63,995 nucleotides of DNA, filler included, from Perkinsus chesapeaki ATCC PRA-425 (GCA_013115145.1; 18 parts of 18 records of this genome joined end to end with filler, not necessarily neighbours in it), one strand, 5' to 3'; shown: positions 16,397-19,887, counted from the whole stretch's first letter. Program-made: numbers and translations. Notes: generated by a model not told the origin, from the letters alone.

Positions 16397-16554
16397 NNNN
16401 NNNNNNNNNNNNNNNNNNNNNNNNNNNNNNNNNNNNNNNNTTAATTAATTAANNNNNNNNNNNNNNNNNNNNNNNNNNNNNNNNNNNNNNNNNNNNACAA
16501 AATTATCGTCCCACGAAGTCATCGCAGCTATACCTCTCATTAGCATAGTATCTT

Positions 16555-16569
16555 GGTCGTTTAGCTCAG
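16555..16569 (+). pseudogene. trnI-AAT: 5' piece of tRNA-Ile(AAT) split by the Dada insertion
   Basis: GGTCGTT+TAGCTCAG. GGTCGTT pairs 6/7 with the acceptor strand ATCGACC at 19355-19361. Confidence 0.8.
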
Positions 16570-19295
16570 GAGGTTCCGGGGGGTTGACACTCAAGGCCGG
16601 GTCCGCGGTTAACCTACGGGTCCGCGGTTGATTTTCCCGGGCTTTCCTTTATTGCTAGGTTTGCGCTGGTGTTTCAAACAGTGGGACTTGTGCGTCGCCT
16701 TCTCGAGGAGAGAGGGGGCGTGCGTCCTCTGAGCCCTGCCCTCCTCTCCTTGTTGCGATTTCTTCTTTTGTTTGTTACCGGGTGACCCACTACCTTATAC
16801 CCGGCTCTTTACCGGGGGGTCCGCGGTTGCCCCTTCCAGGCCCTTTTCCGCTCGGCAAACGCGACAAATACAATAGTTATGGTGTTAACACATCATCATG
16901 CTTTTGTTTATACTTCATTGATCTTCTGTTTTTTTCTTTTTCCTCCTCGAATTCTCGTGGGCTAACGTCTTCCGCCGGAATCCTCAAACCACATTTAATA
17001 CGTCCTCGCCTGTTGATTTTGTGAATAATCCACCAGAGCTTAAGGTCAAATAAACAGCTTCCCACCCGAGAGAACGAGTTAAAGCTACGCTGCATAATGG
17101 AATGAAAACATTCCACCCTCGACGTTCCTCTATTAGCACGATATACTGGGAATTGAATTGAGGATCCCCTATATCCAATGGTATTCACTTGGGACATGCA
17201 TGAGCCCAAATCGGAAACACAGTTCCGATCTATGTGAGTAAGCTGACACTTGTACGTTGAAAAAAAATCTTCCCCTAAGAGCGGCTGGTACCGACTTCCA
17301 ATCGGCGGTGATGAAAGCTGTGAGGTGCTGGGCTCACTTTCTCTCTGGCCCTTCTCCTTCTCCCATTCTTCGAGAGCCATTAGATCCGATTGATAGTATG
17401 CTTGGATCACCCTGTCCACTCTCGACCTGAGCTCGGTTCTCTCTGGGACATACCGGCGTATATGTTTTAATCTATCAGCCTTAGGGACTGCGCCCTGTAT
17501 TCCCAAAGAAACGCGGGCGCGTTCCAGGGCTTGGGCGTCACCAACATCTTGGGCCAGAAAGGCCCTCCCCAAGTCTTTGGATAGCCTACCTGATAGACTG
17601 TGGCTTTGGTTGGATGCTCGCAGGAGACGTGTTATGATATGAAATACATCCAGTCGTACCGCAGTAGCATCAGGTAAATGATTAGCCCAAGCAGACTCGC
17701 CGGATTCCGAGCAACAATTGCAATCGACATAGAATACTCGTGGTGGTGATATACCACCCTTATCATAACGACGAAATACTTCGCTGACAAGTGGTGCAGC
17801 ATAACGCACTGATGTGCTTGGTACTAATCCGCACGATAGCACTGCTCCGAAATCGGATATTATAGTGCATGTCTGCCCGGAAACGTGGGTCGCAGCTACT
17901 TTTCGAGCTACTTTCCTTTGACAATCGATCCCAAGTGAGCCGCCTTCGTTTCCGACAATCCCAGCTAGTTCCCGAGCCAGATACTTCTTTTCTAGTAAAA
18001 GATCTCGGAGCATCATTGCCAATAAGAAATCATAGCTCGGAAGCCATACATTGTCTGGTGGTGCCGGTGCCTCCTCTGGTTTACCTCAAAGCGGATTGGT
18101 TACTTACACACTGAGGATATGAAATCTATTACCTTTGATGAAAGGGTTCCTCATGTCGCTATCCCACTTTTCCACGAACCTTCTCCGCCGAAGTTCGTAT
18201 TCCCGATTTAACGATGCTCTAACATTGCCAACAACTTGACTCAAATTCCCTCCACCCATAAGAGCTCGCCGGGCATGATGTACAACTTCGTAATCCAGTC
18301 CTTTCCCACCACAAACAAACGGGATCATCATCTGGACTCTCAGAGGTAGCGTAATTATGTAGCTTTGATCCCATTTGTAGAATGTGCGTCCACAAGAAGA
18401 GCATACCACACGTGTTGTCTGGGCAACGTAAACCTTATTGAAGTTATAGATTATCTTCTCGTTGGACAACTTGCTAGTGTGCATTAGATTGGACGAATCA
18501 CAGCTGACACAGCGACCGCCTTCTGGGTTCCATAAGAATAAATCATTGCCAAATATAGTCTCAACACAGGGGAGCGGGCGGGCTAGTTCATCAAGCCATT
18601 GGTTTTGACGTATCCACTTGAAGGTGTTGAATGGTGGGGCATTGGCGAGAGACTTGTATGGCTGAGCCCTTGAAGTCGGTCTAGTTCGGTTGGCTAGGTC
18701 ATGAGTTTGTACTCCTACATCTAGAGTCTCTCGCCTGTGGTCGATGACTGACTCAGAACTTATGTTATCGATGCAACCGCTGCCTTTGGCTTCTCTCTCA
18801 TTGATACCATCTTCGATAACTGCCGTGGTTTCTCCATCAACACCAGCCTCAGTTACCAGCGAGGTTACCAGCGAGGCTGGTAGCATAGTACTCTGTTCGG
18901 AGGGATGTGACTTCTCGTCCGATTCAGCAGACTTGAAAAACTGAGCGAACTTCGCTATATTCCTCTCCTTCAGTCTTTCTTCAATTCTCTTCTTCTCTTT
19001 GACCACTTCCTCTGGCAGTTTGCCACTCCGCCTCAACTTGGGCCAAACGCCCGTTTTCTCATACGTAGTAAGGGCATTTCGGTAGATCGGGTCAGCTAAG
19101 GGTCTTTCAATTTTACGGTGGGATTTCGATTTCATTTAGAAATATGAACTACAGCTATGCATATTTATCATCCGTCGCTATACCTGGATACGCTACGCGC
19201 GCGCAGGCGAGCGACGTGGCGCGCTGGCGCGCGCCACTTTCGCTCTTTCGATTTTTTTCTTTTTCCCCCCTTGTGGCAAATTTTTCCCCCCGCCC
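16570..19295 (-). mobile_element. Complete Dada-superfamily DNA transposon inserted in the A-box of a tRNA-Ile gene
   Basis: Flanked by the direct repeat TAGCTCAG (16562-16569, 19296-19303) and by the two tRNA halves. Encodes a DDE/DxxH transposase. Confidence 0.87.
16877..19135 (-). CDS. Dada-type DDE transposase, two exons (19135-18133, 18084-16877), 736 aa
   Basis: A 48-nt GT-AG intron (18085-18132) joins the two ORFs in frame. Motifs: CxxC...CxxC N-domain, GIDCQRK (D), YVDCNCC (D), RLDVFH (DxxH), GTSRVECFH (E). Confidence 0.82.
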
Positions 19296-19362
19296 TAGCT
19301 CAGTCGGTTAGAGCATCGTGCTAATAACGCGAGGGTCGCAGGTTCGAGCCCTGCATCGACCA
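19296..19362 (+). pseudogene. trnI-AAT: 3' piece of tRNA-Ile(AAT), lacking its 5' acceptor strand
   Basis: D-arm, anticodon loop CTAATAA and T-arm are intact, but the 7 nt upstream (CCCGCCC) cannot pair with ATCGACC. Confidence 0.9.
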
Positions 19363-19611
19363 TTGTTGCTCTCGCAGTGAGTTTGTTGCTCTTGCGGTAG
19401 GTTTGCTTGATCGGATCCCACGTCGAAAATTTCTGTGATGATGAAGATTTTCATACAAGCGCGCGACCGAGCGCGTCACAACTGAAACTATGCGTCGCAA
19501 CTGGCGCACTCGACAAACCAAAGTCATAAGGCTAAGCATGCACACAGGGTAGAGCTTTTCACTCTATTTCTATTCAATTCCGGTTAATCTGGGCTTTCTA
19601 TTCTCTTGTAA

Positions 19612-19684
19612 GCGGCTTTGGCGCAGTAGGTAGCGCGTAGGTCTCATAATCCTAAGGTCGCGAGTTCGATCCTCGCAGGCCGCA
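19612..19684 (+). tRNA. trnM-CAT: tRNA-Met(CAT), elongator type
   Basis: Full cloverleaf GCGGCTT...AGGCCGC-A, anticodon loop CTCATAA, TTCGATC T-loop. Confidence 0.93.
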
Positions 19685-19868
19685 TTGTCAACTTTTAGCA
19701 CTCTTTTACGGATTGAAGCATTTGATTTACCGCTACGTGGTGATCGAGTCTCGATCGGCTTCGTACGCTATTCAATCTACAACATGGAGTCGCGGATCGG
19801 CTAGGCCGAATGGTCACTCAGTCCCGCGGCACTCGAAGAGCAGATTTCCAGTTTGTGCATCAGTTGTA

Positions 19869-19887
19869 GCCCGATTAGTTCAGCTGG
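19869..19887 (+). tRNA. Possible 5' start of a third tRNA, cut by the contig end
   Basis: GCCCGAT-TAGTTCAGCTGG resembles an acceptor strand plus A-box; only 19 nt visible. Confidence 0.35.

Follow-up and report, generated by a model that had tools for sequence, protein, structure and literature searches.

A tRNA-Ile gene of Perkinsus chesapeaki split by a Dada-type transposon, most likely shortened by internal deletion

What has entered a tRNA gene on one contig of Perkinsus chesapeaki ATCC PRA-425, and is the inserted element whole? The contig, 3391 bp in its entirety and lying at 16497-19887 of the window (the whole 63,995-nucleotide stretch of DNA that was analysed, filler included), carries a tRNA-Ile(AAT) gene that on direct reading is interrupted after nt 15 by a 2726-bp insert, with TAGCTCAG on each side. 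The locus is explained, with considerable confidence, by a Dada-tI-type transposon that sits in antisense at nt 8-13 of the tRNA-Ile gene, is most likely an internal-deletion derivative, and encodes a 736-aa protein with a CCCC zinc finger and the full DDE core.

The interrupted gene escapes recognition as it stands, as ARAGORN called no tRNA-Ile on the native sequence and made a single call, the neighbouring tRNA-Met(CAT) (Table 1), which shows that the split gene lies in a tRNA-gene neighbourhood. Upon deletion in silico of the insert and one repeat, ARAGORN called a tRNA-Ile(aat) of 74 nt that folds as a normal cloverleaf, in which six of the seven acceptor-stem pairs form and a single mismatch, T6.T67, remains. 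Chance does not account for the 8-bp repeat, since removal of the insert restores the cloverleaf. The Rfam tRNA model, run on the 3' part alone, matched 19296-19354 at model positions 8-63 (43.1 bits, E 4e-7), and both the A-box (TAGCTCAGTCGG) and the B-box (GGTTCGAGCCC) sequences are retained in this downstream part. It is possible that these still bind TFIIIC and the Pol III machinery; a transcript arising from the downstream part would be without the 5' acceptor strand. The original prediction had described a tRNA-Ile split at its A box, with both junctions, the 2726-bp insert, the 74-nt rebuilt gene and both promoter boxes kept downstream, and sequence reading, ARAGORN and Rfam bear it out on each of these, to every coordinate of the split gene and its insert.

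Table 1. Features of the split tRNA-Ile gene and of the inserted element, in coordinates of the window
Feature	Position	Strand	Detail
5' tRNA-Ile(AAT) fragment, nt 1-15	16555..16569	+	GGTCGTT acceptor strand (16555-16561) and TAGCTCAG; cloverleaf closes with 19304-19362
Left TAGCTCAG copy	16562..16569	.	TAGCTC at 16562-16567 is tRNA nt 8-13; AG is nt 14-15
Inserted Dada element, 2726 bp	16570..19295	-	with TAGCTC (6 bp) as the duplication, 16568-19295 (2728 bp)
3' non-coding end, 307 bp	16570..16876	-	three direct CGGGTCCGCGGTT copies: 16598-16610, 16617-16629, 16816-16828
Final 22 codons and stop (EEEKEKNRRSMKYKQKHDDVLTP, then stop)	16877..16945	-	no homology to relatives; break at 16946
Exon 2, DDE catalytic core	16877..18084	-	phmmer, alignment of 49 relatives, AlphaFold, fold search
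48-nt GT..AG intron	18085..18132	-	in-frame TAA and TGA stops inside
Exon 1, N-terminal region with CCCC zinc finger	18133..19135	-	ATG 19135-19133; finger 18392-18511
5' non-coding end, 160 bp	19136..19295	-	G+C-rich near-palindrome 19197-19234
3' tRNA-Ile(AAT) part, nt 8-74	19296..19362	+	right TAGCTCAG 19296-19303, A box, anticodon AAT, B box
Intact neighbour tRNA-Met(CAT)	19612..19684	+	ARAGORN; Rfam 67.6 bits

The site and the ends of the insert are those expected of a known type of element. Dada elements are recognised by insertion at one specific site in a small-RNA gene present in many copies, with 6-7 bp duplicated, and Dada-tIA_PMar of P. marinus shows the same apparent TAGCTCAG repeat, which was read as a 6-bp TAGCTC duplication (Kojima & Jurka 2013, PMC3706591). 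For the tI, tY and tG families of Perkinsus, the insertion site is tRNA nt 8-13, "TAGCTC followed by AG" (Kojima 2022, PMC8869645). In the P. chesapeaki gene GGTCGTT is nt 1-7, TAGCTC nt 8-13 and AG nt 14-15, and therefore both the site, which is the published one of Dada-tIA_PMar and Dada-tIB_PMar, and the apparent 8 bp, as reported for Dada-tIA/tIB/tY_PMar, are those already in the literature. The view that an 8-bp duplication would depart from the 6-7 bp rule is thus not upheld, the same apparent repeat being present in both published accounts (PMC3706591; PMC8869645); with one copy read here, a true duplication of 6 bp and one of 8 bp would both be compatible with the locus. No terminal or sub-terminal inverted repeats were found when the left end was locally aligned with the reverse-complemented right end (score 15, shuffle median 16), in agreement with the reported absence of terminal inverted repeats from Dada elements (PMC3706591), and a search for sub-terminal repeats in common with the target found none except AG..GGTT at the left end.

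The long ORFs of the insert run on the minus strand, and the transposase is accordingly antisense to tRNA-Ile, as had been predicted. Two exons give the 736-aa product, and once the 48-nt intron is removed the 736-codon ORF is free of internal stops and frameshifts. The sole word-search match of exon 1, at 100% identity, was the GenBank hypothetical protein FOL47_001706 (partial, Perkinsus chesapeaki), whose model splices at the same junction, between ...NPFIKG and KPEEAP.... This spliced junction aligns gap-free with two P. olseni relatives, P0152 (KAF4743771.1) and P0158. An alternative splice donor, GTAAGT at 18107, was rejected because its use loses the reading frame. The GenBank model ends 43 residues into exon 2, so that the catalytic half of the protein has been left unannotated. 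The homology searches took the two exons separately, no spliced sequence other than the GenBank model being employed. Within the ORF, two words of 12 and 13 nt (17131-17142 and 18211-18223) are identical to tRNA sequence, which is nominally rare. As a possible guide to the target they were set aside, since they were noticed post hoc and encode amino acids that are not conserved in tIA or tIB, and chance is for these reasons their likelier origin; that they are more than chance would be a weaker addition to the idea, taken up below, of a naturally minimal element.

Membership of the Dada superfamily is carried by exon 2. With this exon as query, phmmer returned 357 matches, of which the top one was P. 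olseni KAF4743016.1 (P0002; 42% identity, E 1.2e-79); P. marinus XP_002784753.1 belongs to a cluster that matched at E 1.4e-76. The latter protein is encoded on a 493,656-bp P. marinus contig, and upon alignment its sequence reads the same as the Dada-tIA_PMar protein of Dataset S1 in the work that placed this element at NW_003214659 491397-486732 (PMC3706591). Since XP_002784753.1 is the Dada-tIA_PMar protein, the exon 2 protein is clearly homologous to a transposase already named as Dada. In tblastn against the 3391-bp contig, XP_002784753.1 gave E 7e-70 and KAF4743771.1 gave E 2.5e-126. The catalytic and motif residues, numbered along the 401-aa translation of 16877-18082, are D53 (17924-17926), D120 (17723-17725), D145xxH148 (17639-17650) and E324 (17111-17113); invariance among the 49 aligned relatives is complete for D120, C123, C124, D145 and H148 and nearly so for E324. 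The spacing from D53 to D120 is 67, and the corresponding spacing between the first and second D of Dada-U6_DR is 68 (PMC3706591). In exon 1 the CCCC zinc finger is formed by C209, C212, C245 and C248, which are invariant in the alignment with the P. olseni relatives and line up by eye with the finger cysteines of tIA and tIB.

Searches of general databases added little to this. Exon 1 matched Pfam DUF6729 at E 8e-6 and 26 bits, below the 27-bit cut-off, with a faint CxC4 match as well. Exon 2 had no match among the Pfam and NCBIfam family models, none in a word search, outside whose length window the full-length relatives fall, and no relative at the sequence level in the PDB. A metagenome scan gave five loci with only 27-31-aa motif matches and no tRNA in any of them; the one examined, L002, was phage-like, and the matches were rejected as spurious.

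The fold of the core is more telling. Exon 2 was modelled with AlphaFold from the alignment of 49 relatives, at pLDDT 93 and pTM 0.87, and the top structural match of the model was the transposase of ISCth4, of the IS256 family (Foldseek E 7e-5; Z 12.6 over 243 residues), followed by retroviral integrase cores (Z about 10, with a span of 8-10), Hermes of the hAT superfamily (9.4) and the P element transposase (8.9). ISCth4 (PDB 6xg8/6xgw), Hermes and the P element transposase share with the modelled core an RNase-H-like DDE fold with an alpha-helical insertion, in which the second D is followed by a C/DxxH motif; however, their sequence identity to the Dada core is just about 12%. Further, IS256 elements have inverted-repeat ends, move by copy-out/paste-in and do not target tRNA genes. 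A kinship of Dada with IS256, hAT, P and MuDR-type elements has been stated (PMC3706591), and the fold matches agree with it; the predicted structure thus confirms the Dada core as an IS256/hAT/P-like DDE fold. The assignment to Dada made in the original prediction stands, on homology to Dada-tIA, on the DDE and DxxH residues, on the CCCC finger and on the fold.

Whether the element is whole is a different matter, as the homology of its relatives breaks sharply at 16946. Eleven Perkinsus and diatom homologues were used as tblastn queries, and all of their alignments end within 16946-17240, ten of them at 16946 or 16952; the exception is P0158, whose own gene model is gapped there. The alignment is lost just past ...VSPREFE, where the relatives go on with (Y)PDFRLA...LPKxGYEY... 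and later with CCHC zinc fingers, extending 300-600 residues beyond the break by tblastn and alignment, whereas the P. chesapeaki ORF continues for 22 unrelated Lys/Glu-rich codons and then stops. Every frame of 16570-16945 (375 bp) was searched for remnants of the C-terminal domain and none was found. The copy therefore lacks the C-terminal 300-450 aa or so, about a third of the protein, and with them the CCHC fingers. A CCHC zinc finger at the C terminus has been stated for all Dada transposases, and complete Dada elements measure 4666-10979 bp (PMC3706591), so that at 2726 bp the present element falls about 2 kb under the shortest of them. The missing finger is read as a loss in this copy and not as evidence against Dada kinship, and the truncated but open ORF marks the end of the DDE core. 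The description of the element as complete is not sustained by these lengths or by the break at 16946. An intact ORF had likewise been proposed, which holds in so far as there is no internal stop after removal of the intron, but fails in that the frame ends 300-450 aa early and without the CCHC fingers. To call the product a candidate active transposase is doubtful, because the ORF ends before those of its relatives, carries no CCHC fingers and lies in an element of only 2.7 kb.

With the C-terminal third of its protein missing and its length some 2 kb below that of any complete Dada, the element is most likely an internal-deletion derivative, truncated with both ends kept, as judged from this sequence. 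The same observations weigh on the proposal, to which we give a low probability, that the element is instead a complete, autonomous and compact Dada, whose 736-aa transposase suffices for sequence-specific excision and insertion and whose true duplication is 8 bp. A perfect duplication at both junctions, distinct non-coding termini (160 and 307 bp), and an uninterrupted two-exon ORF with D, D, DxxH and E intact and a confidently predicted fold would all suit such an element. However, homology to both Perkinsus and diatom proteins ends where the relatives carry hundreds of further residues, the CCHC finger common to the superfamily is absent, the length falls far outside the complete range, and the 8-bp appearance had already been reported and interpreted as 6 bp. 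Truncation is itself not free of difficulty, as 736 open codons with all catalytic residues kept may fit a young or still-selected gene, and the comparison covers just this one copy. Since the ORF is open with all of its catalytic residues, a naturally short autonomous form is possible, and a small chance is accordingly given to a Dada that is short by nature and perhaps still active. Similarly small is the chance that this is a naturally minimal autonomous Dada, in which no more than the CCCC finger and DDE core is needed to find, and integrate at, tRNA-Ile nt 8-13; if true, no smaller sequence-specific DNA transposase would be known from eukaryotes.

It might also be supposed that the two halves were never one gene, and that the locus is a chimera of two tRNA loci, arising by one-ended transposition or recombination between elements, or a collapse in assembly. 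Copies of Dada-tL_DR with flanks from two genes have been described (PMC3706591), the contig is very short at about 3.4 kb, and the rebuilt acceptor stem does hold one T.T mismatch. Set against this, the halves rebuild a canonical 74-nt tRNA-Ile with six of seven acceptor pairs and an exact 8-bp repeat, and G+C is similar in the flanks and in the element, with nothing to mark a join; the supposition is highly improbable.

The internal-deletion reading can be placed among described elements. Dada-tIA_PMar, represented in part by protein XP_002784753.1, is the nearest in kind, being from the same genus, inserted at the same tRNA-Ile nt 8-13 with TAGCTC then AG, without terminal inverted repeats, and with a transposase 38-42% identical across the zinc-finger region and the DDE core (E about 1e-70). 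However, Dada-tIA_PMar is 4666 bp long and intronless, as P. marinus Dada elements are reported to be (PMC3706591), and its protein runs on for about 450 aa beyond the core with CCHC fingers, whereas the P. chesapeaki element has 2726 bp and a 48-nt intron and its protein ends 22 codons after the core. Protein identity is visibly lower to tIB than to Dada-tIA, and at only about 40% to the described tI families it falls short of family identity, so that the P. chesapeaki element forms a separate family with the same target. The best sequence matches, P. olseni KAF4743016.1 and KAF4743771.1, have the zinc finger and the DDE core in common with it but differ by a C-terminal extension of about 320 aa. 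A shortened element with both ends kept is known from zebrafish, where Dada-U6N1_DR has the same target site as its parent Dada-U6_DR (PMC3706591). However, Dada-U6N1_DR retains no more than 231 bp from one end and no longer has coding capacity, whereas the P. chesapeaki copy keeps an open 736-codon ORF and the whole catalytic core.

A model for the movement of such an element can be drawn from its family. The transposase would cut the element ends and join their 3'-OH termini to an A box cut with a stagger of 6 (or 8) bp, and by analogy with other Dada elements this staggered joining would produce the flanking duplication, with the target probably chosen by direct DNA recognition. Excision may proceed either by cut-and-paste, possibly via hairpins as in hAT, or by copy-out/paste-in as in IS256. 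Among cut-and-paste elements abortive gap repair commonly yields internally deleted copies. The P. chesapeaki copy is presumably non-autonomous, and its movement, if any, would rely on a full-length copy.

The Dada superfamily, the tRNA site and the apparent 8-bp repeat were already known, and what is new is the species and the family; since site, repeat and superfamily are all in the literature, the P. chesapeaki element opens no new question. It does correct GenBank model FOL47_001706, which ends short of the catalytic domain. The tRNA-Ile-targeting Dada lineage, published for P. marinus, now takes in P. chesapeaki as well and has relatives in P. olseni, and across Perkinsus the target has stayed at nt 8-13 while the protein has diverged to about 40% identity.

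Two words in the transposase ORF of the Dada-type element are identical to parts of the tRNA-Ile gene that the element splits (see table). After the second of these, ATCGTGCTAATA, and just upstream of the codon for catalytic E324, the ORF agrees with the variable-loop/T-stem region of the tRNA at 12 of 15 positions, the intervening spacer exceeding that of the tRNA by 6 nt. Two exact tRNA matches of at least 12 nt arose in 1 of 2000 dinucleotide shuffles, the best local score of the ORF against tRNA-Ile was reached by 2 of 500 shuffles, and a tRNA-Met control scored below tRNA-Ile in the same local-score comparison, all of these statistics being post hoc. Because of this post hoc character, and because the amino acids at the words are not conserved in Dada-tIA and Dada-tIB, the published tRNA-Ile-targeting families of P. 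marinus, the tRNA-identical words are probably the product of chance.

In the tRNA-Ile gene itself, as rebuilt by removing the insert and one repeat, acceptor pair 6:67 is a T.T mismatch (window 16560 / 19357). It is possible that this reflects decay after the gene was disrupted, a variant gene copy, or flanks that derive from two different genes. A tandem unit directly follows the gene, and no T4 run occurs for ~85 nt 3' of it.

Repeats and palindromes in and beside the Dada-type element
Feature	Position	Orientation or strand	Remarks
Word GTTAGAGCATCGT	18211-18223	minus, transposase sense strand	exact identity to tRNA-Ile nt 19-31
Word ATCGTGCTAATA	within 17107-17142	minus, transposase sense strand	exact identity to tRNA-Ile nt 27-38
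Tandem 20-nt unit TTGTTGCTCTCGCAGTGAGT / TTGTTGCTCTTGCGGTAGGT	19363-19402		80% identical; directly 3' of tRNA-Ile end
T-rich 18-mer TTTTTTTCTTTTTCC.CC, two copies	16928-16945, 19251-19268	direct	17/18 identical
CGGGTCCGCGGTT, three copies	16598-16610, 16617-16629, 16816-16828	direct	3' non-coding end of element
G+C-rich near-palindrome GCGCGCGC...GCGCGCGC	19197-19234		5' non-coding end of element

The element carries other repeats. One copy of the T-rich 18-mer lies exactly at the homology breakpoint, where alignments to relatives end, and the other 27 bp from the right end of the element; the pair scores 31 vs a shuffle maximum of 27. The 18-mer is of low complexity. The copies of CGGGTCCGCGGTT, whose core is the palindromic CCGCGG and which has no counterpart at the other end of the element, may constitute a protein-binding motif. 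A GCGCGC-rich word comparable to the near-palindrome occurs at 19459-19474, in the tRNA spacer beyond the element.

The GenBank model of the transposase (FOL47_001706; 377 aa, partial) stops 43 residues into exon 2 (16877-18084), and the whole catalytic core of the gene is therefore absent from the public protein set. The DDE core of Dada has no model in Pfam. Over the CCCC zinc-finger region, Pfam DUF6729 matches the exon 1 protein (18133-19135) and 6 of the 10 relatives scanned (P0005-P0010) at 16-26 bits, just below the cut-off of 27 bits. The N-terminal domain of Dada transposases seems to be DUF6729. Among the best matches (E 4.9e-41) is a 1248-aa protein of the diatom Thalassiosira exigua (P0005, KAL7553070.1), in which the DUF6729-like region is also present; diatoms therefore hold relatives of Dada.
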